A DNA stretch of 64,000 bases from Schmidtea nova (lineage: Eukaryota), in NCBI GenBank assembly GCA_044892505.1, contig CM097883.1, positions 42,346,001 to 42,410,000 on the forward strand. The letters run 5' to 3'. Shown one piece after another: positions 6,985-40,939 of the stretch. Within the stretch, counting starts at the first letter, position 1. The number at the start of each line of letters is the position of its first letter. Both the position numbers and the translations under genes were made by a program. The notes below the pieces were generated by a model. The model had not been told where the DNA came from. It worked only from the letters and a program-made list of their open reading frames with translations, and made no database searches.

Positions 6985-9134
6985 TTAAAATTTCAAAAGG
7001 TCCTTCGTACTGTTCGCCATTTTTTCCCGTTTGTTTGGCTCAATTCTTACTAATACTCTCTTTCTCACCTTGAAGAGCCTTGTTCCTCGTTTGTTTATGT
7101 CTCTTTCTTGCATAGAAGTAGCAGCTTTATCTAAATTTGATTTTGTCGTATGTAGTACCTCATCTTTCATTTGCTGTACATATCCTGGACTAGAAAACAA
7201 ATTAATTTTCCTACCGTAGACTATTTCAAAGGGTGAGAAATTTGTTGTACTTTGTTTCGTCGCATTGAGACAAAATTCAATTCTCGGTAATATCTCGTCA
7301 TTATGTTTCGTTTGGCATTGACTGCACAAGTTATTTTTTATTCTAGATAAGCCATCAGCATTTCCATGATCTTCTCCTTTTCTGTACTGTAACTCGAAAT
7401 TATACTCTGACAAATTAGCCATCCAATTTTGAAACTGAGGGCTAATTGGCTTCCTCGTGTCCTTCATGAATGTTAAAGCTTTGTGGTCGGTTCTTGCGAC
7501 GAATTCTTTACCATATAAATACTGTTTGAAATTTACAATGAACTCATGGAGTGCTAATAATTCTTTTCTTGATACACAATAACCCATTTCGTGAGTCGTC
7601 AGATGTCTTGATGCGTATGCTATGACGACTTTCCTGCCTTCTTCATTAATCTGGCTTAATACTGCTCCTACGGCTCCAAAACTTGCATCTGTATCAATGA
7701 TAAACTTTCGATCTGATCTCAGAAATTCTAAAATCGGTGCTTCACATAACACCTTCTTTAAGTTATTAAAACTAATGTTACATTCTTCTGACCATATAAC
7801 TTTCTTTTCACCACCTGATGTTGCTGCGTATAACGGTGCTGCAATCTTTGCATAATTTTTTATAAATCGACGGGAATAGTTTGTGAGTCCTAAAAACGCC
7901 CTGAGTTGTGATACACATTCTGGTACTGCTGAATTTTCAATTTCGCTTATTTTTTTTTATTTGTCTGAACACCTTCACCACTGACTGTATGGCCAATAAA
8001 GTTGATTTCCGCCTTATTGAACGAGCACTTTTCCGTGTTAATTCTCAAACCTGTGTTTCTTATCCGTGTTAATACCTCCAACAACAGTTTATCGTGATCA
8101 ATTTGATTATTTGCGTAAACTAGTATATCATCCAAATATACAACAACTCCTTTGAAAATAAGCCCTTCCAGTATTTTATGCATTAATCTTTGAAAAGTTG
8201 CTGGTGCTGTCGATAATCCAAATGGTAGTCGATTAAAACAGAATTGTCCTTCCTTAGTACTAAACGCCGTCTAATTTTGTGAATCCTTCTGCAATTCGAC
8301 TTGGTAGTACGCTTGTCCTAGATCAATTGCTGTAAATATCTTTGACTTACTTAAACAATCCAGTAATAACTGCATATCGGGCATTGGAAACGAAATGTTT
8401 TCCGTTACTGAATTCAATCTTCGAAAATCCAAACACATGCGGATCGAACCATCCTTCTTTCCAACAATCACTAAAGGTGAATTCCAAGGACTTTGGCATC
8501 TTCTAATAACGCCTGCCTCCAATAAGTTTGATATTAATTCGTCAATTGTCGTTTCTAAGTGCATTGGTTGTCTGCGTGGATTCTGTAATATCGGAGGTCC
8601 TATTGTTTTTATTTCGTGTTCTATTAAACGTGTATGGCCAAGATCGAATCGCGATGCAATGAAAATATCGCTAAAGTCTGAAATAATTTTACTTAGTGAT
8701 GAGTTATTCTCGCATTTAATATATTGCAGAGCCTTATCTCTTCTCTCTTCATTTGTGAATGTTAATTTTGTTAACGAAGCTCCAATATTATTTACCTCTT
8801 TCAATTCTAGACCGAACTGCTTCATGGTGTCAACACCGCCTATGAAATCTGGACATATCTTCTTCACAACAACAATATCAAGATTTTTAGACTTTTTGTT
8901 CCATTTCGCATTAACCTTTATACTTCCTAATGGCATTTCATTTTCTTTCGAAAATACACCACTCAAAACTATTTTGCTACTTATCAGTGGTGGACAGCCA
9001 ATATGTTTCCAATAATCTTCACTTATTACGCTAATTGACGCACCAGAATCCCACAACATATCAACTTCTACTTCATTTAGAATAATTCTACTCCAAATCC
9101 TACCATCTTCCTTCATATACATCACATCCTTCAT
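6985..9134 (-). pseudogene. pol of the 6770-10457 element (PR-RT-RNase H, integrase remnant), disrupted
   Basis: LWDSGAS protease, SPWNSPLVIV..KKDGSIRMCLDFRRLN, VYLDD, DTDAS..AVGAVLSQ, RTDHKAL, ADGLSR; several frameshifts and stops. Confidence 0.9.
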
Positions 9135-9160
9135 AACTCCATTTCGATTTCTTGATTGTC

Positions 9161-10170
9161 CTATTGACTCGACCCCACCGACGAAATGTGTACGACAGGG
9201 TCGAATTGGTTTTTTTGATACTCTACATCATGTAAAAGAGGTTCATTGATTATTTCTGAATCATCTTGTTCTTCATCGTGTATACAATATACTTGGTGCT
9301 GTTTCCTTTCGAAATTCTTCTTAATCACATGGCAGTCTCTAAACGTGTGTCCGGTTTTGCCACAAATCAAGCATCTATCTTTCAAAGGACACTGAAATCG
9401 TAAATGAATGCTCTCCCCGCAACATAAACACTGGCCCGGTTTCAAATTATCTTCTTTCGGCTCTGGTAATCCACAACATCTTTTATAAAGTCTCCTTGCA
9501 ATATGCTTCATCGATACGGTTGGTAATTGTCTTCTTTCTTCATATTCATTCGTTTTTCTGTCTCTCTGATCTTCTGATATAGGTTTACTGCTATTAAATT
9601 GCTTATCTTGATATGTTATATTGCGCTGATGGTTTGGTTCAAATACTCTGTTATTTTGAACTATTGCTTTTGGTTTGTTTTTATGCTCCCACTGAGTATT
9701 TCGTTCTCGAACCGCATTTGCATATGACCTTCTATCCACTGCTTGAATTTCTTCAATACGCACGTTTCTTTCCGCGATATCGTTTGATTCAAATACCTTT
9801 GCTAATGTTCGCATTTCTTCTCTTGACATTTTGGCATTAGAAACAAAATTCTCCTTAAACCGTTCATTGTGGACCCTATTGGTAACAATATTTCTCACAA
9901 TTTCTTATCTGGATAATCCACAATCGAAAATATCATCAAGTAATTTTTTTACTCTAATTTCAAAAGTTGCAAATCTTTCTTTTTTTGTTCAACTCTTGCT
10001 AAATCACATATTCTATCAGTGATCGACTCTTTCTTTGTGAATGTGTCACTGAACCATTCTTTTGCCTCTTTATCGGTAATATTTGGAATTTTATAATCCT
10101 TCCATAACATACCAACTTCTTCTGACAATAATAAATCAAAAATGCTTACTAAACTCAACTCGTTCATCAT
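9161..10170 (-). pseudogene. gag of the 6770-10457 element (frameshifted; two CCHC-type knuckles)
   Basis: CLCCGESIHLRFQC and CLICGKTGHTFRDC; split across ORFs 9949-10170 and 9161-9898. Confidence 0.8.
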
Positions 10171-14517: not shown

Positions 14518-15688
14518 TCAGCAAAAACTACTTTCCAATGTAATTACCAATAACTATTCAATTTTATCAAATAATTGAAGAAATCCAAAATAATCCAATT
14601 ACCAATTGGATTATTAAAACAATTCAAAATAATCTACAAAAATCATTTAGAAAATCCATTTAATTCAAATTTAAAAAGATCCCAAATAATCCAATTACCA
14701 ATTGGATTATTAAAACAATTCTGATTGTCAGAATTCAATTAAATTTCTTGAATAATAGCAAGAAAAAATCAATAAAACCACGAACGCGCACACAGACGCG
14801 AAATAACAATTAATCTAGCAATGCGCACACAGGCGCAAATAAAATCATAAAATAATAAGCGCTGCAATCCGCGCACACCGACTCGAACAACCGAAATAGC
14901 CAAAGTTTGCAAACAANNNNNNNNNNNNNNNNNNNNNNNNNNNNNNNNNNNNNNNNNNNNNNNNNNNNNNNNNNNNNNNNNNNNNNNNNNNNNNNNNNNN
15001 NNNNNNNNNNNNNNNNNNNNNNNNNNNNNNNNNNNNNNNNNNNNNNNNNNNNNNNNNNNNNNNNNNNNNNNNNNNNNNNNNNNNNNNNNNNNNNNNNNNN
15101 NNNNNNNNNNNNNNNNNNNNNNNNNNNNNNNNNNNNNNNNNNNNNNNNNNNNNNNNNNNNNNNNNNNNNNNNNNNNNNNNNNNNNNNNNNNNNNNNNNNN
15201 NNNNNNNNNNNNNNNNNNNNNNNNNNNNNNNNNTAATACCATTACCTTTTGATTTTAATACAGGTCCACAATTAAATATAAGTGTACCCTGCTAAGGTTT
15301 TAAGTTCACCTCACCCTAATGGGTATGGTGTTACCATTAATCTGTAATCCTATGTAATCAATTACAAATTTCTGTTAGTCAATAGATTAACTTAAAAATA
15401 ATTTTATCATGAATATTATAGTTTAAATTTCTATTATTGACCGTAATCGAGGGTTAACTATTAAATGATTTATTAACAGTGCTAGATATAAAATGGACCG
15501 CCAAAACGAGAAAAGGGTCAAGAATGAAAAATGTTTAAGAAAACTTGATTATAAGCCGGAAAATGAATTAAGAAAATCTCAGAAACAAGTTTCATGGAAT
15601 TACAAAATTCCGTAAATATTTATCAAGAATTATCCTCATTATTATATTGCGTCATTCAGCAAGAATATTTCATATATAGGCATGCTCA

Positions 15689-16939
15689 ATGGCTTCTTTC
15701 ATCATTCAAATGATTACCAAGTCATTTTTTGATCTGACCAAAAAACCCAAAGAGAGCACGATTGAACTTGAAGGAGCGATTGACAGGCTCAATTGGTCTG
15801 TGTCTTGTAAGCTTTTCCTTTTATCAATTCTTATCATAGCTGCCAAGGTTTATTGGAGCTCTCCCATCGAATGTTACACCCCAATCGCTACATCTGGCAA
15901 AGACTTCGATAAATTCGCAAAGGAATACGGATGGATCAACTCGAAATACAGCAAGATACCGAATAAAGATGGAGCGGCCAATTCACAATCATTGGACAAT
16001 TTCTCGTTAGATTATTACATTTGGACGCCTTTTTATTTATCACTGGCGGCAATTTTACTGTATTTACCGCATGCCGTTTTATCATATGTCACAAGGAAGG
16101 CGGTTGACATAGACTTACAGAACAGTTTGATCAAAGCGCGATCTCTGGCAAGGAAAGTTGGGGCGGTTTCGGAGGAATCAATCTCAGAAATCGCAGACAA
16201 AATGAAAATTATGTTCACATCAGAGAGAAGAATGAAAAGAATCGGCTGGCTGTCATCGGTTAAAAGGATGGTTCATAGATCCTGCTGTCCACTTCTCGTT
16301 CCTTCAAGAAGAAACGGAACAATTCTATCATGGACTTATCTGGTAGTCGCCACCCTGTATTTGCTTGTCAGTTGCACCATTGTAATTGGAATGGCGAGAT
16401 TTGTCGGTTATGCCAATGCCGAGGAGTATTTTGTGTCTATCAGGAACTTCATTGTTGACCGAGAATATGCGAATGCGATTCCGCGATTTCCAAGAATGGC
16501 TTATGCAGTGATGCCGATTGCCGATCAAGCGATGATCAATCATTATGAATTGGAATGCGTTCTACCGATCAACATGCTATGGGGAAATATGTTTATCCTT
16601 TTATCTATTTGGATGATGTTTGTAGCACTGGTGAATGCGCTGAATGTTCTATCGATGCTCCTCAATACGAGTTCGAGGCGAGAATCATTCGTCAAGGCTT
16701 CACTGAATCTTCGAGCTCACGGAGAGTTGAATGATTTGAACCTTGTTAGAAGATTCAGTGAGGAGTTTTTGAAACATGATGGGATTATGATTCTACAATC
16801 CATGGTGTCGAATTGCGGCCAGTATACGACTAGTTATATTGTGTTGGCGCTATGGGACAAATTCTTAGACGAAGAGAGACATGCGCCTCGCTTAGTAATC
16901 TCTGACGTTCCTAGCACCTCTCATAAACGGTTGCAATGA
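15689..16939 (+). CDS. inx: Innexin (gap-junction/hemichannel protein), 416 aa, intronless, copy 1
   Basis: DRLN before TM1, PIEC, YYIW (YYQW motif) followed by LPH, FPR, CVLPIN, four hydrophobic segments, DG..+L near the C-terminus. Confidence 0.93.
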   Translation: MASFIIQMITKSFFDLTKKPKESTIELEGAIDRLNWSVSCKLFLLSILIIAAKVYWSSPIECYTPIATSGKDFDKFAKEYGWINSKYSKIPNKDGAANSQSLDNFSLDYYIWTPFYLSLAAILLYLPHAVLSYVTRKAVDIDLQNSLIKARSLARKVGAVSEESISEIADKMKIMFTSERRMKRIGWLSSVKRMVHRSCCPLLVPSRRNGTILSWTYLVVATLYLLVSCTIVIGMARFVGYANAEEYFVSIRNFIVDREYANAIPRFPRMAYAVMPIADQAMINHYELECVLPINMLWGNMFILLSIWMMFVALVNALNVLSMLLNTSSRRESFVKASLNLRAHGELNDLNLVRRFSEEFLKHDGIMILQSMVSNCGQYTTSYIVLALWDKFLDEERHAPRLVISDVPSTSHKRLQ

Positions 16940-17036
16940 ATAATACATGAAATCCGGAAAAACCTTTGCTAAAATTTAAAATGCATGATTTGATTGATAA
17001 CATATAAATGGGTCATCCTGAAACCTTTTTTCATTG

Positions 17037-17953
17037 TCAAGAAGAATAACACTAAAACCTCCTGGCTAATGAGAGTCAAAAATGCCATTGACAACCTAAG
17101 ACAAAATCACAATATTAATATAAAATTTACCTTTAGTGGAATAGTTCTCGGTACTGAAACAGAATTTTCGGCAAAGGATAAATCTACGCTCACCTATGAT
17201 GTCCAAGAACTTTCCAAAAACCTTCACTGGATGTTGAAAGAACAATACCTTATCACCTGGAAAGCTGCTATATGCCAAGGTTATATCCACAGGCTCCCAG
17301 TCTCAGATTATATGGAAAAATCCTTTCCGAAAATACTCCACGATAATGAATGGTGATTTCTTGTTAAAGCATGGTCAAATATGCTCGATCTCAACTTCAA
17401 GCAATCGAATCAAGGTGGGAGAATTGGATCGATAAGCTGCAGAAGATGCCAATATATCAAAGAATGCTCTCCTCATGTCATCAACCATTGCAACTTTGGA
17501 AATGCAATTAGAACCGCAAAGCATAATGAAGTCCAAAAACGGCTTGCAAAACTCCTAAAATCCAAAGAGTTGGCCTTCGAGCTTGAATCCAGACCTCCTG
17601 AATCCACCCAAAATCTTCGACCAGACATCATTATTCGTCAAAAAGATAAGATAATAATCTTGGATATCAAGTGCCCCTTCGATGATTCCAGCTCTGTGGA
17701 ACAGGCTCGTAACAAGAACTGCGACAAATACCGACTTCTAGCTACCGAAATCCATACAGTTACAGGCATCAAGACCACAGTCCAAACGTTCGTGATTTGT
17801 TCCCTTGGTACGTGGGACAAAAGAAATAACGATGTCCTCAAAATACTCGGTTTCAAATTCTCTGATTACAAGAACTACAAAAATGATATAATCCAAAAGG
17901 TGATAACCGGATCCCGAATGACCTACGACATTCATCGAGGGTTCAATGTTTAA
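17037..17953 (+). mobile_element. 5'-truncated non-LTR retrotransposon 3' end with restriction-like endonuclease (R2/NeSL group)
   Basis: CRRC..E...HVINHC knuckle, KHN, RPDII, ILDIKCPFD, K..KY, SLGTW; in-frame TGA at 17354-17356; no RT domain left. Confidence 0.85.
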
Positions 17954-18059
17954 TACCTAGTGTTCTCTAGCTCCAATTGATGTCCCATTATCTTCGAAGT
18001 TTCGAGATAATTGCTATACTTGTCCTTAGTGGCAATTAGAATTGTTGTATTAATAAATT

Positions 18060-19191
18060 TTAGTCATTCAATACCGTAGCGTTATTCGCTTTCTCTTTCT
18101 GATAGGAAAAAATAGAGAAGAGGTTCTTTCTGAACTGAAAGCTGTTTACCAACAAGAGTGCTCATCCACAGCAACAATTTATCGTTGGTTCAATTACTTT
18201 CAGAGTGGTAGAACCTCCGTGGTGGACGAAGAAAGATCTGGAAGACCATCAGAAATTGATGAAAAAATAACGCAAAAGCTGCAGATAATCGTGCAAAATG
18301 AGAGAAAAATAACGACGAGAGAGCTCACAACCCGTCTAAATGTGAACAAAGGCACTGTGCATACTCTAATCACTGAAAGTGGTATTCGAAAACTATGTTC
18401 CCGTTTTGTGCCACGCTTATTAACGGTGGAAATGCGATAACGACGCTTGGAATGCTGCTTGGAGAATCTGCAGATCAGGACCAATGTTGGATAATTGATA
18501 ATATCATTGATAATATCATCACTGCGAACAAGACACCGTTGTCCCTTTATGTCCCCTAATCTAAAAGAAAGTCTCAAGAATAGAAACTGCTAGGAGAAAG
18601 CAGCTCACTGAAAATGCGGTCCTCAACTTGCCACCGAAAGGCTCTCATGCTGACGGTGTTTTGGGACGCCAATGGCATTATTCTGACTGACTTTGCTGAA
18701 TCCGGCGTGAAGATCAATAGTTCTTACTACTCCAACATCGTGCAGCAAGCAAGGAAGGCACGACGCAAGAGCAGAGTGTGTGATCTCTATTTTTTACACG
18801 ATAATGCTCCCATCCACACCAGCAGCGTTTCCATGGCCAAAATTGAGCGTTACGGGCTCAATTTGCTTCCCCATATACCATACAGCCCCGATTTGGCTCC
18901 CTACGATTTTTTCCTGTTTAACCATCTTAAGAAGCATCTGCGGGGTGAGGTGTTTGCCAACAAACATGATTTGAGAGCAGCCGCGGAGAGTTTTCTGGGA
19001 GAAAAGCCTCCAGAATTTTTCAAAAACGCCTTCGAAAACCTCATTATTCGCTGGGAAAATTGTGTCAGCGCAGAAGGAAATTATTTTGAGAAATGATGCC
19101 TATTTACCCTGCTTGTTCTAAATACAAAGTTTTGTGTTGATATCTTAAGTCTTTCTATTTTAGTCTCACGACTTATTGGGCGCACCACGTA
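18060..19191 (+). mobile_element. Mariner (DD34D) transposon relic; left TIR missing
   Basis: YRSVIRFL N-terminus, RSGRP, RFVPRLLT (WVPHEL-like), MLTVFWD, HDNAPIH, PYSPDLAPYDF; right TIR tagtctcacgacttattgggcgcaccacgta ending in TA; stops and frameshifts in the ORF. Confidence 0.9.
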
Positions 19192-24933: not shown

Positions 24934-25960
24934 CCAATAAGAAAAAATAACTCTTCTACAAATTCTGAAATTTTTCTAAATAAATGTTTGGTTACCACAA
25001 ATTCTTCTGAAATCAAAATAAAAATTTTTTACGACAAAATTCTCACAAATTCTGAAAATTTTTTCCACAAATTCTGAGAAGTTCCATTTTGATGGCTGTA
25101 TATATACCATCCATTTTTCGCTATCTTCACTAGTGCAATAAAACAAATTGTTCTAGAATTTTCTCTTAATTTTTTCTAAATTAATTCTAATGATTTTCCG
25201 AAAATTAATTCCATATTTTTGTATAATAATTTTTTATAGACCATAAATAATTTATTTTAATTCAAAATTTTTATGTTTGAATCGAAATTTTCTCAATTTG
25301 ATTTAATTTATGATATTTCGATCAATATTAATTCTTTCTATTGTTAAATGTGAAATTTTGTGATGAATTCACAATTTTCTTCTAAAATTGTGTTAATTTT
25401 TCTGCACTGAAGGTTTATGACAAAATTCTGTTCTTTATGGGCATTTTCAATGGGTTTTCAGCCTATTCTAACTTTCAAACGTTCTGCTTTTAATTTTTCT
25501 CGAGATTTCAGTGAAAAGACTTGCAAATTTACAGCTAGCGCGTACTCTACCGGTTGATGTGTTTTGATTCCACTTCACCTTTTGGTGTTTTTCACTTAAT
25601 TGTTGGATTTTTAATGGATGCTAGGGTTAAAAATGGAATCTTGCGCGTTCTCTACCTATGGGATTATCGCTGTATTAAAACAAATTGCAGTTTTTGCCCA
25701 ACAATTGTTTTTATTTTTAATAAAATATTTGCAAATGAAATCTTATTTCATAAAATATGTTTAAATTTATTCAGACAAGGAAGTAAATTAAATTCTTTTT
25801 ATTTTTTATTAGCGCAAAATATTGCTCTGCCGTCAAAGTAGAAAAGGAACTTTGAGAGCTGTTCGTTTCTTTTCTGATAAGTATCATTGGATTGATTCAT
25901 TATTCCTTTAGTTCCTGACCTTGAATTTTTATCTCATCATTAGATCAGTGAGCTTCCTGA

Positions 25961-27186
25961 TGTTGGATGATCGAGGGAAGCCCATCCAAGCATTTACCCT
26001 GAACAAATATTACAGGACAGGGCCTAATCGATACATGGTTAATATATATGCAGAAACCCAGTCCGAAAATAATGCAGACTCCATCTTCAATCGCCTCAAA
26101 TAATCACCCTTCTTCAATCAAAGCTAACAGAGCCTAAAATAATCACCCTTCTTCAATCAAAGCTAACAGAGCCTAAAATAATCACCCTTCTTCAATCAAA
26201 GCCAACAAAGCCTCAAATAATCACTATATGACTATGTTTATGTGATCACAACTTTATTATCTAATATACTTTTAAATTTTGTATATGAGTGTCATTATTC
26301 TGTATTTGAAGTGTATATAATTATTCTGTACTTGAATTTCATAATTATTCCGTATATTATCATTTGAATTTTATGTATATTTGTGTAAAAATCTATAAGG
26401 TAATATATCTGTATATGACAGTGCATGAGATGTGAAGTAATAATATATTAAAAAGGGCAAATTGTAGATAATAAATTTTTAATAAAAAATAATAATTTTA
26501 GATAATAATATATTAAAAAGGGCAAATTGTAGATAATAAATTTTAGATATTTATTTAATAAAAAAATAATAATTTTAGATAACGACAAATTGTAAAACGA
26601 CAAGATGTAAATTCTAGATATTATTCTAGATATTGAGCCAGATAAAATAAACAAAATCCGGTTAAAAAGACCGATTGAAATATAAATATTTTAAATAAAT
26701 ATAATTATATGATGGTTAAAAAGACCGATTGAAATATAAATATTTTAATATAATGATTGTCGAACAAGATAAAAATTTACTATATAAGCTGATGGAAAAA
26801 TCAGAAAAAAGGCCCAAAAAATTTCATAGCTTTAAAATCTAATTTTAAACTAAAGAATTAAAATCTGCGCAATATCGAGTTTTCAAGGAAATCTTGAAAA
26901 ACTTATTAAAACCCGGATCAGAAACATTGGATCCACAAATAAAATATAGCACGCACTACATAGCAGTCACCCAATAGGTTCAATTACAAGAATTGATTTG
27001 ACACGACTTTTTCTTTTTTAAAAAAATTGTGTAATAAAGAATTTGAGTTATTAATTGTAAACGGAATAAAAAGTAATTTTATTGTATTAATAAAATTTTG
27101 AAACAAACTTTGTTTTTGATATTTATATACGAATCACCCCAATAACGAGTTGAGATTGCAAATAGCAAATATTTGGAACCTCAACA
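25961..27186 (+). repeat. 5' LTR
   Basis: Matches 38727-39952 (one mismatch seen by eye, 27120 T vs 39886 C); internal 38-bp x3 repeat at ~26098-26222; AATAAA at ~27064. Confidence 0.97.
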
Positions 27187-27188
27187 TT

Positions 27189-27206
27189 TGGTGCCGCGAA
27201 CCGGGA
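27189..27206 (+). promoter_or_regulatory. Primer-binding site TGGTGCCGCGAACCGGGA, probably tRNA-Phe
   Basis: 2 nt after the LTR; has the shape TGG-T-acceptor stem-T arm of metazoan tRNA-Phe (15/18 match to TGGTGCCGAAACCCGGGA). Confidence 0.7.
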
Positions 27207-27435
27207 CAATAAAATATCATAATATCAATTGGGGGATAGGAATTGCGATCAGAGGGATATTGTAATATATATCGGGAAAATATATTTATATAAATATTAT
27301 TGACCAAAACAGAAATTCGAAAATATACAAACATATAAGGTTAACAATAACAAAATAGGTAAAAAGATAAAGAAAGTTATTATAGATAAGCCACCTGAAA
27401 TATTACACAAGTTAAGAAATAAGGTAATATACAAA

Positions 27436-30400
27436 ATGAGTAATAATAGTACAGGCAGCAATAATAGTGGAAGTAACTGCAATACAGACAACATCAACAG
27501 TAATCATAATTTTATAAAAACACTACCAATAGAATCATATAAAGGAGACCCTGAAAAGTTCGACGACTTTTTTGTCGAAATCGCACAATATGCAGAGGCT
27601 TGCGGATGGAAAACAAATGAATTAAAACAACGAATTCCATTATATTTAAAAGGATATGCATTACAAGCATACAATAATTTAGCATGTAAAGGCATTAATT
27701 ATCAAGAGTTAGTTACAAACCTTAGAAAAGAAATAGTAATAGATAGAGACTTACAAAAAATAAATGTTCAAAAATTTAGAAGTAGATACCAAGGAGCAAG
27801 AGAATCAGTAGGTGAATATATATACACGATAACAGAATTAGCAAAAAAGGCATTTGGTGCAGAAGATCACACTAGTAGGTTAATCGAGGATCAGTTTTGG
27901 AACGGAATCCAAAAATATTTATACAAAGCATTAATTACGATTGAATATGAAGACTTAAATGAATTAGTACAAAAAGCAAAACGCATCGAAGCAATACAAA
28001 GAGATCGATTTAGACCAGAGATAGACGCTGTAGAAATTGAAAAGCAACTTGAGGTAAAACCTGAGTTGAAAAATAAAGATGATAGTATCCCTTGGGAAGA
28101 AATGAAACAATTATATTTGAATTTTGTTAATAATAGAAGAAAATTTAGTCCTAATAGAAGCCAATCACCTGAAAACAAGGGAAGGTTTAACAGTTCAGGA
28201 AATAAAAATTTTGATAATAGAAATAGAGATAATTTTAAAGATAACTATAAAGGGAATAATAATAGAGATAGTTTTAGAGACAATCGTTCTGGTTATAACA
28301 GTTACAGTGGATATAATAGAAATAATAGAGATAGTCGCTTCGAATATAATAGAAGAGATAATAGATATAGAGATAATTCGAGAAATAGACAAGATAGCCC
28401 AGTGAGGCGAAATAATAATGAGGGTAGGGATAAAGTGAATTTTAATGGACAAATAAAATGTTACAATTGCCAAAAGTATGGTCACCTAGCAAAGGTATGT
28501 AATAAACCACGAGCAGATTCACCGATAAGAGTAAGATTTAAAAATGAGCCTGAGATAAAGCAGGTAAATAGCGCTGAGCTTGAATCAGCAAATAACGAAA
28601 TAAACATATTAAGAGAAGAATTAAAAGAATTTAAAACGCAATATGGAAGACTTATTGAGAGAAAGCTTGAAATGTCTATAAATGAATTTAGTACTTTTAC
28701 AAATGAAGTAGATATCGATAATGATGAGTTAAAAGAAATTAGAGAAGCAGATGAAATATTTCTCACAGAAGAAAATAAACAAAAAGAATTGATAGAAGAA
28801 TTTAAAGAGATATTGTATAAACAACCATTTGATGATAACGAAACACTGAGAATAATCAATAAAATACAAGTCAATGGGATTGAATTAGACAAGCTTAGAA
28901 ATTTGATACCAATGATGGTAAAGAGGCAAAATATAACGAAAATATTTGAATTAGAAATAGAAATAAAAGAGATGTTAAAATGTTATGGAGAATATATAAG
29001 AAAAAATGAAAGACTGCATGAAACACTAAAGGTAACGATTGAATCAAACGATAACTACTTTTCCAGAAACAAACAAAGGGTACATCCTTGCACTAAAGTG
29101 AGCAAATTAAAACGAATGGTAAGAGCCAAATGGCCAGGAACCATAGGAGAGAAAGATGTAATAAAATTATATTTTAACGGAATAGAATTATTGAGTGACG
29201 AGTATTTAATCGATTATGGGATAAACCCAGTAAGTGATAATATTGTGGTAGCCACAATAGAAAAACGAATGGTCGATGAGATAGTGACGCCAGTACCGTC
29301 GGTTGAATTGAGTATAAATGAAGAAAACGATTTTGATAGATTATTTAGGCTATGGGATAAATCACCTAGCGAAACAAAGAAATCAGCAAGGGATGAAGAA
29401 ATTATATTTAAACCTATAGATAAAAAATATAGTAACTTACAAGAAACAATAGAAAGAATAGCTGACGAAGCAAAAACAAAAGATGCAGAAACATCAAAAC
29501 GAGGTAGAGGAAGACCTCGAAAATCAGAAATAATAGAAAAATCGGACAATAGAAAAACAGCGGAACGATTAAAAGAAATCGCAAACAAACAAAGACATGA
29601 AACACTAGAATACCAAGATGACAACAACGACATAAATAAAATAAAAGAAATAATAAAAGTCATGAATATTAAGCTATTTCCAGAAACAAGACCAACGGTA
29701 CTCATAGAAAACATAACAGAAAAAATGAAACTAATTAAAAAAGATACCAAAAGACTAGCCACAGAAGAAGCAGATGAAAAAACAGTATTAAAGATCCTGT
29801 TTAATACAGGGATAGATAAAGATAGAATAATAACGGCCATGGCATACTTGGCTGCAAGATACAAAAAAATTATAAAGGAAAATCTAAAAGGACAATTAGA
29901 CAACGTGGTAACGATGATGTATAAAAAATTGAAGGTAGAAGCAATACCCTGGATAAAAATGAAAGGAGGATGGAAAATATTATATGATGAGGATACGACA
30001 AACAAAGAAAGTGATACAGATAAAGTAATAAAACAATTAATAGAGAAAACAACAATAAAACCAAAAACAGAAAACAAATCGATAACCTCCACAGTAATAG
30101 TAATAATAACATTATTATTAGATTTAATTAAGGGTAGCAATGCAATAATAGCATATGATTGTCAAAACCCAAAATGGGGACAAAAATATTCATTGTTGGA
30201 TGTCGAAAATTGCCCAGAAGCAAATCCAACTAAATTAATCATGTCAGAGCCTCAAATGTTTCATGTTTATCAAGAATCAGATTTTATTCATACGGAAGCT
30301 AAAGAGTGCATCATAAAGTATCAGGAGGAAGCATATATATGCCATGCTGGGGCAAGAACAGTTTTAAAACCCACATGGACACCAGAAGCAGTAATATTAT

Positions 30401-30840
30401 CACCAATGGAGTGTGAGGAGGCATTTAAAACAAAGAAAGCTAAATATAGCGGTCACAAAGGAATCGAGCTAGAAGCAAGAATAGGAGCAAAGATGAGACA
30501 GGACGTAAATATTGTAGGATGGACATCAAAAGGGGGTTATTGTGAAGGAGGAGAGTATACCGTATGGGGTGAAAAACTCAGTAATGTTGTAGTAAGAAGG
30601 CACTACATGGTAGAACTAAGAAAATTCAAGGCATCATTTGACAGCAGCTCAAAGAAAATGATGATATACAAATTTTGTACATTAGAAGAATCATATTGCG
30701 ATACAGGAGAATCAATGCTAATATATAAAATAGATAAATACGATTGCCAATTAACAAAATTAAAATCATTAAAATTTAGAGAGATCAAAGGGAAACAGTT
30801 CACAGATGTAGACTCAAAAAGAGTGAGAGATCAAAAATGA
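27436..30840 (+). CDS. Polyprotein part 1 (1134 aa): Gag capsid, CCHC knuckle, ubiquitin-like domain, AT-hook, signal peptide, N-terminal half of fusion glycoprotein
   Basis: Retrotransposon Gag motifs (PLYLKGYA, RYQGARESVGEY), CYNCQKYGHLAKVC (28459-28500), RGRGRPRK, hydrophobic VIVIITLLLDLIKGSNA followed by IIAYDC...YSLLDVENC. Confidence 0.9.
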   Translation: MSNNSTGSNNSGSNCNTDNINSNHNFIKTLPIESYKGDPEKFDDFFVEIAQYAEACGWKTNELKQRIPLYLKGYALQAYNNLACKGINYQELVTNLRKEIVIDRDLQKINVQKFRSRYQGARESVGEYIYTITELAKKAFGAEDHTSRLIEDQFWNGIQKYLYKALITIEYEDLNELVQKAKRIEAIQRDRFRPEIDAVEIEKQLEVKPELKNKDDSIPWEEMKQLYLNFVNNRRKFSPNRSQSPENKGRFNSSGNKNFDNRNRDNFKDNYKGNNNRDSFRDNRSGYNSYSGYNRNNRDSRFEYNRRDNRYRDNSRNRQDSPVRRNNNEGRDKVNFNGQIKCYNCQKYGHLAKVCNKPRADSPIRVRFKNEPEIKQVNSAELESANNEINILREELKEFKTQYGRLIERKLEMSINEFSTFTNEVDIDNDELKEIREADEIFLTEENKQKELIEEFKEILYKQPFDDNETLRIINKIQVNGIELDKLRNLIPMMVKRQNITKIFELEIEIKEMLKCYGEYIRKNERLHETLKVTIESNDNYFSRNKQRVHPCTKVSKLKRMVRAKWPGTIGEKDVIKLYFNGIELLSDEYLIDYGINPVSDNIVVATIEKRMVDEIVTPVPSVELSINEENDFDRLFRLWDKSPSETKKSARDEEIIFKPIDKKYSNLQETIERIADEAKTKDAETSKRGRGRPRKSEIIEKSDNRKTAERLKEIANKQRHETLEYQDDNNDINKIKEIIKVMNIKLFPETRPTVLIENITEKMKLIKKDTKRLATEEADEKTVLKILFNTGIDKDRIITAMAYLAARYKKIIKENLKGQLDNVVTMMYKKLKVEAIPWIKMKGGWKILYDEDTTNKESDTDKVIKQLIEKTTIKPKTENKSITSTVIVIITLLLDLIKGSNAIIAYDCQNPKWGQKYSLLDVENCPEANPTKLIMSEPQMFHVYQESDFIHTEAKECIIKYQEEAYICHAGARTVLKPTWTPEAVILSPMECEEAFKTKKAKYSGHKGIELEARIGAKMRQDVNIVGWTSKGGYCEGGEYTVWGEKLSNVVVRRHYMVELRKFKASFDSSSKKMMIYKFCTLEESYCDTGESMLIYKIDKYDCQLTKLKSLKFREIKGKQFTDVDSKRVRDQK

Positions 30841-30882
30841 AAAACAACAATTGTACAAGAAAAAGATACACCAACAATATAT

Positions 30883-33800
30883 ATGTCAGAATCTGAAAAC
30901 GAAGCAATGAGGTTCGTTAGAAAAAGGAAAAGTGTAAAATGTGGTAAGGAAATAATACAAACTAATTATGAAGGGATATACATAAGTAGAGAAGAAGTCA
31001 AAGATGCAAAACAAAAAGTAAATAAATTCGACGTCAAACTCGCATCATATTTCAACAATAAAATAGATTTTTTCTATCATAATCAACTATTGCAATTAGA
31101 TAAAGTATATCAATCAACAATCATGAGCGATTGCAAACTCAACAGAGAAATATTAAGGACAAAAATGGCAGTCGCGGTAACAAACCCAGATTTGATGGCA
31201 CCAATAATCTTCTCAGAAGAAGGAACATTTGCCAGGATAGTAGGAGAAGTGATACAGACATTTCAATGCAAACCTGTTAGTGTATCATTGGCAACAAACA
31301 ATCAGTGCACAAATGAGTTACCAGTAATATACAAAGGAGAAAGGGTATACCTTCAACCAATTACTAGAATACTAACAGAAAAAACATATGTACCAAGAAA
31401 AATAGAAAAATGCACTAATTTATTAGATCCATTATACAAAATAAATGACGAAATGTGGATATCTATGTCAGATAGGAAAGAGGCGATGAAACCACTCAAA
31501 TTAGAACTCATAGAGCTTGAAAAAAGATTGGAGTTTAAAGAAATCAACGATATGGATAGCAATGGCATATATACGAGAGAAGCTATAGAAAGTGCAAGAA
31601 AACACATGTTATTCCCAAACGAAAAAGAAAGAATACTGTCAATAATGGTAAACAAAGTTATCGAAGGAAGTTACGGAGGAAATTACAATTTTGACGTGTT
31701 GTTATCAAAAGAATATTTCAAAAAAGTAGCATATAAAGTATTATATAGTATATGGGGATATTTTGCAGTCCTTGGAAACATGTTCTCTACAATTTTGGGA
31801 ATTTACTATACGGTTGCTTTACTAAAAATGGTTTGTTCTTCTTTAGTATCACTACGACAGCTGAAACAAGTATTCGGAAATTCATATAAATTACTAGCAT
31901 GTTTATTCCCGTTTGTAGCCAAATACCTGATTACGGCAAAACATGATAAAGAAATACGTTTAATAAAAATCCAAAGGAATGAAGAAAGGCAAATATTGAT
32001 AGATGATGAAAACAATGAGGAAATAGTTAAAACGCATATATCACATGAAGGAAATGCACCACAACAAGGACTATACAAAAACCAAAGAGAACAATTAAAA
32101 GAGTTACAAGAAAATATAGAGATTAAAATTCCTAGAGAAAGTAAGAATTGTTACTGTGAACCCAAAAAAATATATGGTTGTTATAGCTTGGAAGTCGAAA
32201 TGATGGAGCAATTAGAGACAGCAAACGAAGCAAGGCCAAGACTTAAAATAATTATAAACAATATAATCATAAATGCACTAGTAGATACTGGAGCAGCAAC
32301 GTCCCTGATTAGGGAAGATCAACTTACAGATGGTCAAAAGAGAAATATTATGAAAACAATGGATAAAGTAGTAACACTATCAGCACACTACATTCCACTA
32401 AAAGGAGATATTGAATTAGTAGTTGAAACATCAGAACAAGTAATACACCACATATTTAAAGTAGTACAAGAATGCAATAGCATATGTATACTAGGGATCG
32501 ATATACTCAACAAGCTGAATAACTGCATCATAGACTTAACGGATAACACGATTAAAAGAAAAGCTATCAAACATAAGTCCAAGTTCACGGAAGTTGTTGC
32601 ATTAGAAGCATTCGAATTAGAATATGAGTGTGATCATATAATCCCCATAAAAGTTAACGTCAAAAGTGAGGACACTTTTATTTTCGAGCCAGAAACGGCA
32701 ATTACACAAAATATAATGTTAACTAATGAATGCGTAATTCCAAAAAAGGGAATAATCCCATTAAGAATAGCGAATTATGAAAAAAGTAATATAAAAATAC
32801 ACAAAGGCACAAAATTGGGAAAACTATTCAAAGGCAAATTTGAGAAAACGTATGAAGTCAGCGAGACAAGTGTGATAAATGATAACGGCAAAAGAGTGGT
32901 CGAACCTAGTAAGACAAATAGTATAAAATCATACGACAAAGTGAAAATCAATAATAAATACCTAACAATAACACAACAAGCACAATTACAGACACTAATA
33001 GATGAATACAGCGATGTTTTTGCAAAACATGAATTTGATTTAGGAGATACTGACATAATCAAACATGTAATAGATACGGGCAATGCAAGACCAATAAAAC
33101 AAAGACCATATAGCGTACCATATAAACTAAGAGAAGAGATAAAGCGACAAATTAAAGAATTAAAAGACGCAGGTGTAATAAAACAAAGTTTTTCACAGTG
33201 GGCATCACCCATTGTACCCGTCAAAAAGAAAGACGGAGAAATAAGAATGTGCATTGACTATCGTAAATTAAATGATGTAACAGTAAAAGATTCATATCCA
33301 TTCCCAAAAGCACAAGAGCAATATGATAAACTTAGGGATGCTAAGTATTTTTCAGTCATTGATGCGAATAAGGGGTATATGCAAATTCAAATGGAAGAAG
33401 GGGATGCAGAGAAAACAGCATTTGTTATTGAGGATGGTTTATATGAGTACACACGATTACCCTTCGGATTAACTAATGCGCCAGCCACATTTCAACGTCT
33501 AATGAACACAATATTAGTAAATGTACAACACTGCGCAGTTTACATGGATGACATATTAATATCATCAATGACATTCGAGGAACATCTAAAAGATATAACA
33601 AACGTACTTGAGAGACTAAGAAAAGCAAGGATAAAAATTAAACCAACCAAATGTAAATGGGCAGAGTCTTCGGCACTATTTTTAGGGCATATAGTCACAG
33701 TAGAAGGGATAAAACCAAATCCAGAAAATATAGAAGTTGTAAAGAAATTCCCAATACCAAAAACAGTACAACAAGTACAAGGGTTTTTAGGTTTAACAGG

Positions 33801-36480
33801 ATACTATCGTAAATTCATACAAGATTATGCAAAGATAGCAACACCTATAATAGAACTAACAAAGGGAATTAAAACAAAAGGAGAATGCAAAGACGTGTTA
33901 ATAGTACAAGAAATTAACAATAAAGTTAACAAGATACAAAAGAAATGGACAAAAGAACATCAAGAAGCATTCGACAAACTAAAAGAAAGATTGATAACAG
34001 CATCAGTGTTAAGATACCCAAATTTCGAAAAACAATTTATAGTAATGACGGATGCCAGAGGGAAAGCCGTAGGAGCAGTATTGGGCCAAGAAGAAGAGAA
34101 AGGGAAAGATTACGTAATAGCATATGCCAGTAAAACATTAAAAGGAGCACAGCTGAGGTATTCAACAATAGAAAAAGAATGTTACGCAATAGTATTTGCC
34201 CTAAAACAATTCAAACCATACATCTACGGAACTGAAGTGATAATAAGAACAGACCATAAACCATTAGAAGGCTTATGGAAACATAAAGATACATCAAGTA
34301 GATTACTTAAATGGGCAATGAAAATACAAGACATGCACCTAAAAATTATATATAAACCAGGTAGAATAAATAAAAACGCAGATGCACTATCAAGAATACC
34401 AGAATTAGGAGCACTTGAAATATTTGCACTAGTAGCAGAAAAGCCAATAGATATATATGAGGAACAGATGAAAGACCCAGAGATCAATAAAATAAGGAAT
34501 GAAATCAGAAAAGAAAACAATTCAAAATATCAAATATCAAAGAAATTAGTAGTAATAGAAGATTTCAACGGTAAGCAATTAATAGTAGTACCTCAGAAAT
34601 TAAGACAAATACTCCTACTACAATATCACGATGGAGCATTAGGAGGTCACTTATCATCTAGAAAGACAGCAAGTAGATTATTACAAAAATATTACTGGGA
34701 AGAATTAAAGAAAGATGTTAAGAGATGGTGTAACGCGTGTACAATATGTGCAACAAGAAAAAATACAGGTACAAAAACAAAAGCGCCGTTACACCCCATT
34801 CCAGCAACAACATCACCAATGGAACTATGTGCAATGGATTTTCTATGTAAATTACCTACTACAATTAATGGGAATAAACATATACTAGTATTTAGTGATT
34901 ATTTTACTAGATGGGCAGAAGCATTTCCAACAAAAGACGAAACAGCAGAAACAGTTGCTAAATTGCTTATAGAAAAAATTATTTTCAAGATAGGCACACC
35001 CAAAAGATTATTAACAGATAAAGGAACAAATTTTACTAGTGAATTAATAAAACGAGTAGCTAATATTTTTAACATGCAAAAGATCAACACAACAGCGTAT
35101 CACCCTCAAACTGATGGACTAGTAGAAAGATTTAATGGGACATTACTAAGCAGACTAGCTGTTTTTGTAGGAAAAAATCAAAATGATTGGGACGAATACA
35201 TAAGTCAATGCACATACATTCATAATATCACTCCAAACGAAACAACAGGGTATTCGCCGTATTATTTAATGTTTTTAAGAGAACCAGCAACACCAATAGA
35301 TACAATATTTGAACCTCGAGTATCACAATATTTAGATGCACCAGATTATGTCACACTAATGCAGGAAAAACTGCAAGAAGTGTATAAAGTAGCCAATCTA
35401 AAAGTCAAATATAGACAAGAACAATACAAAGCCGACTACGACAAAAATAGTAAACCACACAACTTTAAAGTAGGCGATAAGGTTAGACTTATGTCACCAC
35501 AAGTAGGAAAGGGAAAGACAACAAAATTAGCAAGACCATATAAAGGTCCATATGAAGTAGTAAAAGTAATAAATGAGAATTTACATTTACAAAAGCATAA
35601 AAACGAGGATCCAATAGTAGTACATGTCAACAGATGCAAGTTGGCGGAAGCCGAGGTCACGATAGATAAACCTCACAAGTATAATCTAAGATCTCATAAC
35701 AAACTAATAATATCGGCTATCTTCTTAACAATCATAACAATTGTTGGCTCAACCAAAACAATAGAATTCGACAGAGTATTAATAAAAATATCAACAAACG
35801 AAGTTAGAGCATTTATCATAAATAGAGGAGTAATTGATTTATACATGCAAACAACGAATGGGAAAAACCCAAAGATGATAAAAGGAAAGGACGACAGAAC
35901 AACCAACGAAATCGAAAGAGGAAACTATATTAATTTCACAAAACTAACACCTAATACAATATATAGAATCTGCATACAGAGAAACACAGATACAACAACA
36001 TGGAGATGCAAAAAGATAAAAACAGAACAATTACCCAAGGATATAATAAAAAATCAAAACATAACACCCGATAGAATAAAAAGCACAACAACGAAATCAA
36101 ATAATAGACTAAATACCACACTACATACAAACGAAATACCAACAAGCACTGGAATAGCCAAACTCCAAAAACAATACAATGCCAAAAAACAAAAACAAGA
36201 ACCTATCAAAATAAGGCAAGGAAGACCAATAGTGATACATAACTTAGAGGAACTACAAGCATTTCGTAAAAAAGATAAAAATCCACATTGGCCTTTTTAT
36301 GTCATCACAACATCAATAATAGCATTAGCAGTTTTAGCTTTAATAACTAGCGTACAAATTTATAAAAAGTACAAATGGAAAAGGCAGCGGTATCGGAGCC
36401 AACTGGTCAGAAATGTACCAGGGCATTTCCATTTGGATAAATATATACCAGGTGAATATTCGAGGTCCACATTGGTATAA
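30883..36480 (+). CDS. Polyprotein part 2 (1865 aa, same frame as part 1): glycoprotein C-terminal half with TMs, PR, RT, RNase H, IN, FN3-like/TM module
   Basis: GEVIQTFQC..V.V...C.NELPV...LQPITRIL glycoprotein motifs; DTG 32284; YMDD 33541; TDA/EKEC/RTDHKPL; HHCC, MDF, TD.GTNF, ERFN, GPY; C-terminal signal peptide, FN3-like domain and TM. Confidence 0.93.
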   Translation: MSESENEAMRFVRKRKSVKCGKEIIQTNYEGIYISREEVKDAKQKVNKFDVKLASYFNNKIDFFYHNQLLQLDKVYQSTIMSDCKLNREILRTKMAVAVTNPDLMAPIIFSEEGTFARIVGEVIQTFQCKPVSVSLATNNQCTNELPVIYKGERVYLQPITRILTEKTYVPRKIEKCTNLLDPLYKINDEMWISMSDRKEAMKPLKLELIELEKRLEFKEINDMDSNGIYTREAIESARKHMLFPNEKERILSIMVNKVIEGSYGGNYNFDVLLSKEYFKKVAYKVLYSIWGYFAVLGNMFSTILGIYYTVALLKMVCSSLVSLRQLKQVFGNSYKLLACLFPFVAKYLITAKHDKEIRLIKIQRNEERQILIDDENNEEIVKTHISHEGNAPQQGLYKNQREQLKELQENIEIKIPRESKNCYCEPKKIYGCYSLEVEMMEQLETANEARPRLKIIINNIIINALVDTGAATSLIREDQLTDGQKRNIMKTMDKVVTLSAHYIPLKGDIELVVETSEQVIHHIFKVVQECNSICILGIDILNKLNNCIIDLTDNTIKRKAIKHKSKFTEVVALEAFELEYECDHIIPIKVNVKSEDTFIFEPETAITQNIMLTNECVIPKKGIIPLRIANYEKSNIKIHKGTKLGKLFKGKFEKTYEVSETSVINDNGKRVVEPSKTNSIKSYDKVKINNKYLTITQQAQLQTLIDEYSDVFAKHEFDLGDTDIIKHVIDTGNARPIKQRPYSVPYKLREEIKRQIKELKDAGVIKQSFSQWASPIVPVKKKDGEIRMCIDYRKLNDVTVKDSYPFPKAQEQYDKLRDAKYFSVIDANKGYMQIQMEEGDAEKTAFVIEDGLYEYTRLPFGLTNAPATFQRLMNTILVNVQHCAVYMDDILISSMTFEEHLKDITNVLERLRKARIKIKPTKCKWAESSALFLGHIVTVEGIKPNPENIEVVKKFPIPKTVQQVQGFLGLTGYYRKFIQDYAKIATPIIELTKGIKTKGECKDVLIVQEINNKVNKIQKKWTKEHQEAFDKLKERLITASVLRYPNFEKQFIVMTDARGKAVGAVLGQEEEKGKDYVIAYASKTLKGAQLRYSTIEKECYAIVFALKQFKPYIYGTEVIIRTDHKPLEGLWKHKDTSSRLLKWAMKIQDMHLKIIYKPGRINKNADALSRIPELGALEIFALVAEKPIDIYEEQMKDPEINKIRNEIRKENNSKYQISKKLVVIEDFNGKQLIVVPQKLRQILLLQYHDGALGGHLSSRKTASRLLQKYYWEELKKDVKRWCNACTICATRKNTGTKTKAPLHPIPATTSPMELCAMDFLCKLPTTINGNKHILVFSDYFTRWAEAFPTKDETAETVAKLLIEKIIFKIGTPKRLLTDKGTNFTSELIKRVANIFNMQKINTTAYHPQTDGLVERFNGTLLSRLAVFVGKNQNDWDEYISQCTYIHNITPNETTGYSPYYLMFLREPATPIDTIFEPRVSQYLDAPDYVTLMQEKLQEVYKVANLKVKYRQEQYKADYDKNSKPHNFKVGDKVRLMSPQVGKGKTTKLARPYKGPYEVVKVINENLHLQKHKNEDPIVVHVNRCKLAEAEVTIDKPHKYNLRSHNKLIISAIFLTIITIVGSTKTIEFDRVLIKISTNEVRAFIINRGVIDLYMQTTNGKNPKMIKGKDDRTTNEIERGNYINFTKLTPNTIYRICIQRNTDTTTWRCKKIKTEQLPKDIIKNQNITPDRIKSTTTKSNNRLNTTLHTNEIPTSTGIAKLQKQYNAKKQKQEPIKIRQGRPIVIHNLEELQAFRKKDKNPHWPFYVITTSIIALAVLALITSVQIYKKYKWKRQRYRSQLVRNVPGHFHLDKYIPGEYSRSTLV

Positions 36481-36769
36481 GTTAAATTGGTCAATAATAT
36501 ATATTAAAATCACATATATCTGTATCTATAAAATAGCGTATAAGGTTAAACCTGAAATACGCTCTCAACATAAAAATTTACATTTTATTTTTAGAAAAAC
36601 AAGTCACCCATTTGACAAACAACCCAATAAAGCCAGTTTTACATCAAATCCTCAGCACAATCAAAACAATAAAACCAACTCCCAATCAAATCGTTCCAAT
36701 TTTCAATCCAATCACAAATCAAGTCGTAAAATCATATCTCGATCTCATTATCAATCTATATTCTTAGTG

Positions 36770-36905
36770 TTTTATCGTTTACTAACTTATCAATCAATAT
36801 CCCGATTCTTAGTGTTTTATTGTTTGTTAACTTATCAATCAATATCCCGATTCTTAGTGTTCTATTGTTTACTAACTTATCAATCAATATCCCGATTCTT
36901 GTGTC
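36770..36905. repeat. 42-bp tandem repeat x~3.3 between pol and ORF3
   Basis: ttcttagtgttttatcgtttactaacttatcaatcaatatcccga repeated; ends just before ATG 36917. Confidence 0.9.
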
Positions 36906-36916
36906 TTCAATTAACA

Positions 36917-38869: not shown

Positions 38870-39952
38870 TCACCCTTCTTCAATCAAAGCTAACAGAGCC
38901 TAAAATAATCACCCTTCTTCAATCAAAGCTAACAGAGCCTAAAATAATCACCCTTCTTCAATCAAAGCCAACAAAGCCTCAAATAATCACTATATGACTA
39001 TGTTTATGTGATCACAACTTTATTATCTAATATACTTTTAAATTTTGTATATGAGTGTCATTATTCTGTATTTGAAGTGTATATAATTATTCTGTACTTG
39101 AATTTCATAATTATTCCGTATATTATCATTTGAATTTTATGTATATTTGTGTAAAAATCTATAAGGTAATATATCTGTATATGACAGTGCATGAGATGTG
39201 AAGTAATAATATATTAAAAAGGGCAAATTGTAGATAATAAATTTTTAATAAAAAATAATAATTTTAGATAATAATATATTAAAAAGGGCAAATTGTAGAT
39301 AATAAATTTTAGATATTTATTTAATAAAAAAATAATAATTTTAGATAACGACAAATTGTAAAACGACAAGATGTAAATTCTAGATATTATTCTAGATATT
39401 GAGCCAGATAAAATAAACAAAATCCGGTTAAAAAGACCGATTGAAATATAAATATTTTAAATAAATATAATTATATGATGGTTAAAAAGACCGATTGAAA
39501 TATAAATATTTTAATATAATGATTGTCGAACAAGATAAAAATTTACTATATAAGCTGATGGAAAAATCAGAAAAAAGGCCCAAAAAATTTCATAGCTTTA
39601 AAATCTAATTTTAAACTAAAGAATTAAAATCTGCGCAATATCGAGTTTTCAAGGAAATCTTGAAAAACTTATTAAAACCCGGATCAGAAACATTGGATCC
39701 ACAAATAAAATATAGCACGCACTACATAGCAGTCACCCAATAGGTTCAATTACAAGAATTGATTTGACACGACTTTTTCTTTTTTAAAAAAATTGTGTAA
39801 TAAAGAATTTGAGTTATTAATTGTAAACGGAATAAAAAGTAATTTTATTGTATTAATAAAATTTTGAAACAAACTTTGTTTTTGACATTTATATACGAAT
39901 CACCCCAATAACGAGTTGAGATTGCAAATAGCAAATATTTGGAACCTCAACA
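38727..39952 (+). repeat. 3' LTR
   Basis: See 5' LTR. Confidence 0.97.
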
Positions 39953-40939
39953 CTGAGGAACCTGCAGTTTAAAACTGACATTGCAACTCTTACGTTTTGA
40001 CAACCTGAAATAGAGTTGTATGTTGGTGGGCTACATGACAGAAGAAATAGGTCCATTTTATCTTTCTTTTTTGGATTGGTTTTTGAAGGAATATTTCTGT
40101 CATGGATTTCCAAAAAATATATTGCTCAAAAAACTTTGAAATATGATATTGTGATTAAAGCACAATAGTTAAACCTAAATATTATTAGAAATTTCTTTTT
40201 TTACCATTTTATAATAAGAATTTATAACAATTAAATTTGAACTTGTTTCCATCATCTAATACATGAAAACAAAGTTGTACTCTGTTAATAATATCTTTTC
40301 TGTGATGGTTTAAGAGACTGAAACTTGATGTTTATAATACTTGGCTAGTGATAATACCTGGTCGATTATTATATTCTTACTCTGACTGAATACACAACTG
40401 AAATACACACTTGATAAAGGCTGTGCCGAAATATTGTGTACTTGTTTAAAAATAAACTTTTGATTTATAGGCTTATGTAAATTATTGATATTAATATTAA
40501 ACAAGGATCAAAGGTTAAACAAAAAGATAATTATGATTTAATTTTCTATCAAACATTACAAAGAAATTTACGAAGTTAAAATAAAATTTTATTTAAAACT
40601 CGATATTACGAATCACAATCTTCATCTATTTTTCTTAATCCGTGCGCATTCTTTATTATAGAAAGAGGAAGAGATAAAAAAAGGTTTTAAAATCAATTAT
40701 GATACACGTTTTAGTTTTCTGTAATTATTCACATGATTCTGACTGCAAAACACTAATGTAAATATGTGAATGTATTAAACACTGTTGACCATTTATAAAA
40801 ATGATTTTCATGAAGACTTTTAAACCTTGCAACTGTATCTCAATGAAAAAAATGGTTTGAGGATGACCCATTTATATGTTATCAATCAAATCATGCATTT
40901 TAAATTTTAGCAAAGGTTTTTCCGGATTTCATGTATTAT

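Follow-up and report, generated by a model that had tools for sequence, protein, structure and literature searches.

A flatworm innexin subfamily with one cysteine in each extracellular loop

Open-access reviews and family papers describe two cysteines per extracellular loop as strictly conserved in all innexins, and the variation that they report goes only toward more cysteines (4+2 in Hydra, 6 in Zpg). The window, as we call the whole 64,000-nucleotide stretch of Schmidtea nova DNA analyzed here, contains an intact innexin reading frame at positions 15689-16939 of the forward strand that has one cysteine per loop. This locus raises the question of whether its product is still an innexin, whether the missing cysteines were indeed bond partners, and what kind of channel might be formed without them.

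Identity of the reading frame and state of its loop cysteines

The reading frame codes for an innexin-family protein with the innexin fold. It is open for 416 amino acids from its first ATG, and residues 30 to 392 match the Pfam innexin family (PF00876) over profile positions 3-333 of 333, with an E value of 1.5e-43 and 149.7 bits, the curated cut-off being 25 bits. A phmmer search of solved structures returned Caenorhabditis elegans INX-6 (5h1q) at the top (E 3e-16), with pannexin-1 next. AlphaFold2, run with a 95-sequence alignment, gave a confident innexin model (pLDDT 88, pTM 0.85) in which the four-transmembrane (TM) fold, the N-terminal helix, the E1 helix, the E2 beta-hairpin and the helical cytoplasmic domain match those of INX-6; a Foldseek search with the predicted fold placed INX-6 entries at ranks 1 to 5 (TM scores of 0.65-0.72 by target length), followed by pannexins and LRRC8. 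TM2 opens with the YY(x)W motif and has its conserved proline (Y109, Y110, I111, W112, P114, P127), the x position being Ile or Met in the clade of the query where Gln is the usual residue.

Translation probably starts at M8 (15710), which would give a protein of 409 amino acids, rather than at the first ATG, since the relatives described below all begin with MITKS and a TATA-like motif lies 37-39 nt upstream of this start in three genes. In the window, the putative core promoter (15647-15678, forward strand) consists of TTGCGTCAT, which is CRE-like, and TATATA (15673-15678), 37 nt before the MITKS ATG, and the order and spacing of its motifs are repeated upstream of two related genes, on contigs L001 and L002. 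The series common to the three genes 5' of the ATG comprises TTAAGGAA, the CRE-like TTACGTCAT and TATA(A/T)A, the last of these 37-39 nt before the MITKS start codon. These motifs have been kept despite saturated synonymous sites, and the shared series may represent a conserved core promoter.

Two of the four expected loop cysteines are retained. C62 (TGT, 15872-15874), the first cysteine of extracellular loop 1 (EL1-C1), is aligned by phmmer to INX-6 C58, and C290 (TGC, 16556-16558), the second cysteine of loop 2 (EL2-C2), corresponds to INX-6 C265 and lies on the second strand (283-291) of the predicted E2 hairpin. At the two remaining columns, G81 (GGA, 15929-15931) replaces EL1-C2, equivalent to INX-6 C76 and UNC-7 C191, within the predicted E1 helix (71-84), and A273 (GCA, 16505-16507) replaces EL2-C1, equivalent to INX-6 C248, on the first hairpin strand (270-278); all four codons are on the forward strand. 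In the phmmer alignment of the query over INX-6, the corresponding segments read PIECYTP over PITCWTP, EYGW over QYCF, FPRMAYA over FPRIVHC and ELECVLP over TVLCVLT, and the EL2 cysteine-to-cysteine spacing of 17 residues is preserved as A273-C290. Because the INX-6 structure contains the disulfides C58-C265 and C76-C248 (Oshima et al. 2016, PMC5146279), the residues missing at the G81 and A273 columns are partners of one bond. An earlier note on this sequence had named the same two kept and two lost cysteines and had proposed that the lost ones form a pair; its four coordinates (15872, 16556, 15929 and 16505) are exact, and the alignment to INX-6 together with the published bond list bears out the pairing.

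It is exceedingly improbable that the missing cysteines are an alignment artefact, with other cysteines belonging at these positions. The other cysteines of the query (40, 199, 200, 229 and 376) all lie outside EL1 (57-108) and EL2 (240-292), which leaves no displaced cysteine to take over, and the count of one cysteine per loop, C62 and C290, refutes this explanation. The usual family pair per loop is absent from the protein, which does not exclude homology. Column assignments agree between phmmer, MAFFT alignments with 8, 95 and 156 rows, and the AlphaFold secondary structure.

A predicted N-glycosylation sequon, N104-F-S (15998-16006, forward strand), is located at the end of EL1, just before YYIW; the sequon is NLS in the relative P0001 and absent in the relative P0002.

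Relatives, rarity and order of loss

Word-based and exhaustive HMMER searches yielded a small set of close relatives, all with Gly at EL1-C2 and Ala at EL2-C1. They are P0001, a UniParc entry with 81% identity to the window protein; P0002, encoded on the ENA contig L001, with 58% identity; and P0003 and P0013, the two exons of one gene on contig L002 (53% and 67% identity), which were handled as separate sequences throughout. Judged from these sequences, the Gly/Ala state is not a private mutation. Among the window gene, the L001 gene and exon 2 of the L002 gene, pN ranges from 0.25 to 0.29 and pS from 0.71 to 0.74 (saturated), and the frame has stayed open after a divergence from these relatives at dS above 2, with a pN/pS of about 0.35. 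As pN is far below pS, the subfamily is under long-term purifying selection. The suggestion of the earlier note that this is a selected variant therefore agrees with both the sharing of Gly and Ala by relatives at 81, 58 and 53% identity and the low pN.

Conservation is highest in the N-terminus, TM1, EL1 and TM2, with 65-78% identity to P0002 compared to 45-57% elsewhere; these are the pore-lining elements in INX-6. The loops themselves are 83% (EL1) and 81% (EL2) identical to P0001, and 65% and 57% identical to P0002. With regard to gene structure, the L002 innexin has one GT-AG intron of about 55 nt (at L002:466-503), in phase 1 and just before its YYMW motif, and the L001 gene and the window gene are intronless, so that intron presence varies within this small subfamily.

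To place this state in the family, we aligned with MAFFT the 150 best representatives of 50%-identity clusters, out of 1024 homologues. Four loop cysteines (C-C-C-C) were found in 131 of these 150, and most of the others are fragments. In the cleaner 95-row alignment, Cys stands at both columns in 100% of the sequences other than the query clade, P0035 and P0030, and the only full-length exceptions among the best 150 of the 1024 are the query clade (G/A), P0035 (G/T) and P0030/P0175 (I/G). P0030 comes from the same ENA assembly as P0002, and the near-identical P0175 was found in a Logan assembly; the I/G state is thus not dependent on one assembly. Every lineage without the bond carries at least one Gly at the pair (G/A, G/T or I/G), which would fit two backbone segments that are kept in van der Waals contact. 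A scan of JGI metagenomes with the subfamily alignment gave 598 pattern matches, 0 of which were confirmed.

A search with P0035 further recovered P0176 (UniParc UPI0006096F8C), which is 54% identical to P0035 and has the configuration C-C-A-C: EL1-C2 is kept, EL2-C1 is Ala, and three loop cysteines remain. This implies a free extracellular thiol or an intermolecular bond in P0176. In the maximum likelihood tree, P0035 and P0176 are sister to the query clade with 98/95 support, although the long stems call for caution about long-branch attraction; the two groups also share the derived states T86 to K/R, Q111 to a hydrophobic or aromatic residue, N227 to V, and W306 to S. Because P0176, the kin of P0035, keeps EL1-C2 while lacking EL2-C1, the bond was probably lost stepwise rather than strictly simultaneously. 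On the simplest reading, EL2-C1 would have been lost first in the common ancestor, and the orphaned EL1-C2 later and more than once. Of the concerted loss postulated in the earlier note, what stands is that both partners are eventually gone; simultaneous loss is not required, given the C-C-A-C intermediate.

Residues that are otherwise conserved family-wide have changed at many further positions in the query clade, including Y76F, T86K, Q111I/M (YYQW to YYIW), W131L, K221A/T, Q231I, G247Y, N298W, W306S and W323, and its stem measures 1.66 changes per site. At the level of sequence, the cysteine loss is one of many departures in a fast-evolving subfamily. All members of the enclosing 28-row clade (100/99 support) that carry a name belong to the Platyhelminthes, the genera being Taenia, Schistosoma, Trichobilharzia, Paragonimus, Macrostomum, Spirometra and Cichlidogyrus. 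On sequence evidence, the gene would come from a free-living flatworm, probably a triclad planarian.

Two copies in a transposon-rich window

The innexin gene is present twice in the window. The duplicated unit of copy 1 (15439-17036, forward strand) is made up of 250 nt of upstream sequence, the reading frame and about 97 nt downstream, and the inverted unit of copy 2 (40841-42440, reverse strand) holds a reading frame at 40940-42190 (reverse strand) whose product is identical to that of copy 1 at 412 of 416 amino acids, with the same Gly81 and Ala273. By blastn, 15439-17036 and 42440-40841 are 99.4% identical over 1600 nt. The copies differ at 8 nt (4 nonsynonymous, 2 synonymous and 2 non-coding changes), with copy-specific coding variants at 15967, 16494, 16842 and 16910; a dN/dS from these six coding differences is uninformative on the constraint of these particular copies.

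Both copies are located in a region dominated by transposable elements (TEs), the window being AT-rich (about 30% GC) and full of retroelements. Among its reading frames of at least 150 amino acids, only the innexin copies have a non-TE Pfam match, and no further gene was found. Between the copies lies a 14-kb Gypsy-type element (25960-39952) with internal reading frames at 27436-38869 and long terminal repeats (LTRs) of 1227 nt each (25960-27186 and 38726-39952); since the LTRs are 99.9% identical, its insertion appears to be very recent. A reading frame of 1469 amino acids (46713-51122, reverse strand) encodes a reverse transcriptase (E 3.5e-29) preceded by a Ulp1/C48 protease domain at the N-terminus (E 1e-5). 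Further TE fragments, at 18614-19096 (forward strand), 6985-9898 (reverse strand) and 61397-62005 (reverse strand), include a piece of a mariner-type DDE transposase and Gypsy/retroviral protease, reverse transcriptase and RNase H pieces. We also considered whether the inverted innexin copies might be the terminal repeats of a large mobile element, and rejected this since homology is confined to the 1.6-kb unit and the 14-kb Gypsy-type element between them has its own LTRs. An origin as a processed retrogene is not supported either: although the gene is intronless, 250 nt of 5' sequence carrying the conserved motifs belong to the duplicated unit, which lacks a poly(A) tail.

Four sequencing runs of one study contain the sequence, none of them recorded as RNA. 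To judge from the Nextera adaptor ends and a repeat with a depth of 300-1000x, their contigs appear to be genomic DNA. Independent contigs from the four runs are exact matches to copy 1, and the copy-2 allele at 16494 was seen in run X4. Every site that differs between the copies is crossed without a break by a single contig in runs X1 and X3, and copy 2 may therefore be absent in some individuals. The exact window protein is not on record in the gene-call collection, as determined by exact look-up.

The two flanks of the copy-1 unit have features of their own. On the left, the unit is adjoined by an assembly gap (14917-15233), and the X1 and X3 contigs cease to match the window left of 15381 (15234-15381) and run on into other sequence; either individuals differ in structure here, or the assembly is faulty beside the gap. 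On the right, a high-copy repeat (17036-18000) begins exactly where the innexin duplication ends, at 17036. At this point, contig depth in runs X2 and X4 increases from about 17-25 to 300-1000, and left of 17036 the sequence differs in other copies of the repeat. A reading frame within the repeat (17381-17953) has weak nuclease-like Pfam matches (L_protein_N and CoiA_nuc, E about 1e-3).

Possible function and comparison with known channels

On balance, we favor the reading that the product of this gene is a functional subunit of an innexin-fold large-pore channel with one loop disulfide, belonging to a small, selectively maintained flatworm subfamily. The extracellular domain would be held by the single disulfide C62-C290, the equivalent of INX-6 C58-C265. 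In the ordinary case, the second bond, C76-C248 in INX-6, links the E1 helix, which lines the pore, with the first strand of the E2 hairpin; here the bond would be replaced by a putative Gly/Ala contact, and such tiny residues could keep helix and strand tightly packed in a noncovalent manner. EL2-C1 would have been lost before the then unpaired EL1-C2. The channel would presumably still assemble, and the freed E1 helix might alter both the extracellular mouth and the docking surface; E1 helix and E2 hairpin also build the docking surface in INX-6 (PMC5146279).

Within this preferred reading, we lean tentatively toward a channel that does not dock or docks poorly, or toward a modulatory subunit of mixed channels, over a classical homotypic gap junction. 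This lean is based on the analogy to UNC-7 C191A, which is altered at the G81 column and loses junction plaques while it still rescues a neuronal phenotype, a non-junctional function (Bouhours et al. 2011, PMC3102621), and on the predicted EL1 sequon, kept in P0001; the absence of the sequon in P0002 speaks against it. Cys-less UNC-7 likewise forms no junction-like plaques and still rescues, and Neuro2A cells expressing it are not coupled (PMC3102621). The failure of pannexins to dock is generally attributed to glycosylation of their loops, but junctions are also formed by some innexins with such sequons (PMC8769644). As published cysteine mutants point both ways, the non-docking hemichannel that the earlier note had put forward, next to one with altered docking specificity, is a plausible candidate only. 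Zpg cysteine mutants are cytoplasmic and null (PMC9578636), and Panx1, according to a review, needs all four cysteines even as a single-membrane channel (PMC3928549), so that loss of the bond is not generally harmless. Also against a non-docking channel, an engineered mutation by which one cysteine is left unpaired makes a poor model for a natural Gly/Ala pair. Rather doubtful, in our estimate, is the more specific proposal that a conserved flatworm innexin clade gave up the bond between E1 helix and E2 hairpin and now provides a pannexin-like single-membrane channel or a docking-blocking subunit. If it were true, protostomes would have reached non-junctional innexin channels independently, through removal of a bond rather than, or besides, an added glycan, and P0176 would be a preserved half-lost intermediate.

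The protein might instead still form gap junctions, one disulfide and Gly/Ala packing being enough for docking, possibly with a changed partner preference, be it through heterotypic docking with one given innexin or through acting solely within heteromeric hemichannels. We regard this as possible but less probable. The loops are well conserved within the subfamily, as a partner-binding surface would be, the model is highly confident for the E2 hairpin and the E1 helix, and the many uncharacterized flatworm innexins leave room for specialized pairs (46 innexin contigs, 11 of them named, in Dugesia ryukyuensis; PMC12654950). However, junctional localization is lost in both UNC-7 C191A and Cys-less UNC-7, the latter losing coupling as well, and the described innexins that we found with demonstrated junction function all have four cysteines.

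It is improbable that the two copies in the window are young duplicates without function, or a stretch that the assembly has doubled in error, with the functional member, if there is one, located elsewhere. Youth alone could explain the intact frames, and several features of the locus agree with this: the unit is only 1.6 kb long and lies between TEs beside the assembly gap, nonsynonymous changes between the copies outnumber synonymous ones 4 to 2, none of the runs containing the sequence is recorded as RNA, and the unbroken X1/X3 contig suggests that copy 2 may be missing in some individuals. Yet the frame has remained open over a divergence of dS above 2 with pN/pS at about 0.35, the unit carries the conserved upstream motifs, and four runs reproduce copy 1 exactly, with X4 showing the copy-2 allele at 16494.

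No innexin with fewer than four loop cysteines was found described in open-access full text; as our literature search covered open-access text, we call the subfamily undescribed only provisionally. The earlier note had allowed that the substitutions could be a long-known feature of a described subfamily, and within this body of text no such description appeared. Planarian entries in a survey of 1521 innexins are already known genes only, and the subfamily motifs were not found in the supplements of PMC12654950 and PMC8769644. Planarian transcriptomes hold many more innexins than the 11-13 described, among them the very divergent D. ryukyuensis transcripts TR966 and TR31404, listed with 25-28% identity to their best hits and with no sequences given (PMC12654950).

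As seen in the available sequences, the Gly/Ala subfamily is a real and conserved variant, within a large and diverse family, that runs against a textbook rule. The role of the loop bond, in docking or in folding and trafficking, has been argued from engineered mutants that disagree, and a naturally evolved and maintained single-bond subfamily would be ready-made material for testing it; the two other bond-less lineages, and P0176 with its one unpaired cysteine, would offer further material. The subfamily also pinpoints an uncharacterized part of the flatworm innexin repertoire and may bear on gap-junction signaling in planarian regeneration.

Among known channels, INX-6 (5h1q/5h1r; PMC5146279) shares with the query the Pfam family, the predicted fold and the first disulfide (C58-C265, the counterpart of C62-C290). 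It differs in sequence (about 18% identity), in having C76-C248 where the query has G81/A273, and in YYQW where the query has YYIW. The nearest named relatives, at 26-30% identity, are canonical platyhelminth innexins, namely, Schistosoma mansoni G4V7R2 (P0012), Taenia solium "Innexin unc-9" (P0007) and the Paragonimus (P0014) and Macrostomum (P0019) proteins; P0012, P0014 and P0019 group with the query in one clade with 100/99 support, and these innexins keep four loop cysteines, whereas the query clade does not. UNC-7 C191 is the second EL1 cysteine and thus the G81 column, its spacing (173/191 and 377/394) matching that of INX-6 (58/76 and 248/265). UNC-7 C191A is, however, an engineered change that leaves the partner cysteine unpaired, while the double replacement in the query arose naturally, has long been conserved and sits in another protein context.

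P0035/P0176 and P0030/P0175, from public assemblies, lack the same bond as the query and are only 22-24% identical to it. P0035 retains more canonical residues than the query (W131, Q231, G247, E299 and K300), and P0176 has the EL1-C2 that the query is without. Finally, the pannexins (Panx1-3) are homologous to the query, share its fold and came second in both sequence and structure searches. They are non-junctional channels with N-glycosylated loops, and the query has a predicted EL1 sequon. Pannexins keep four loop cysteines, whereas the query has two and is not a pannexin orthologue.
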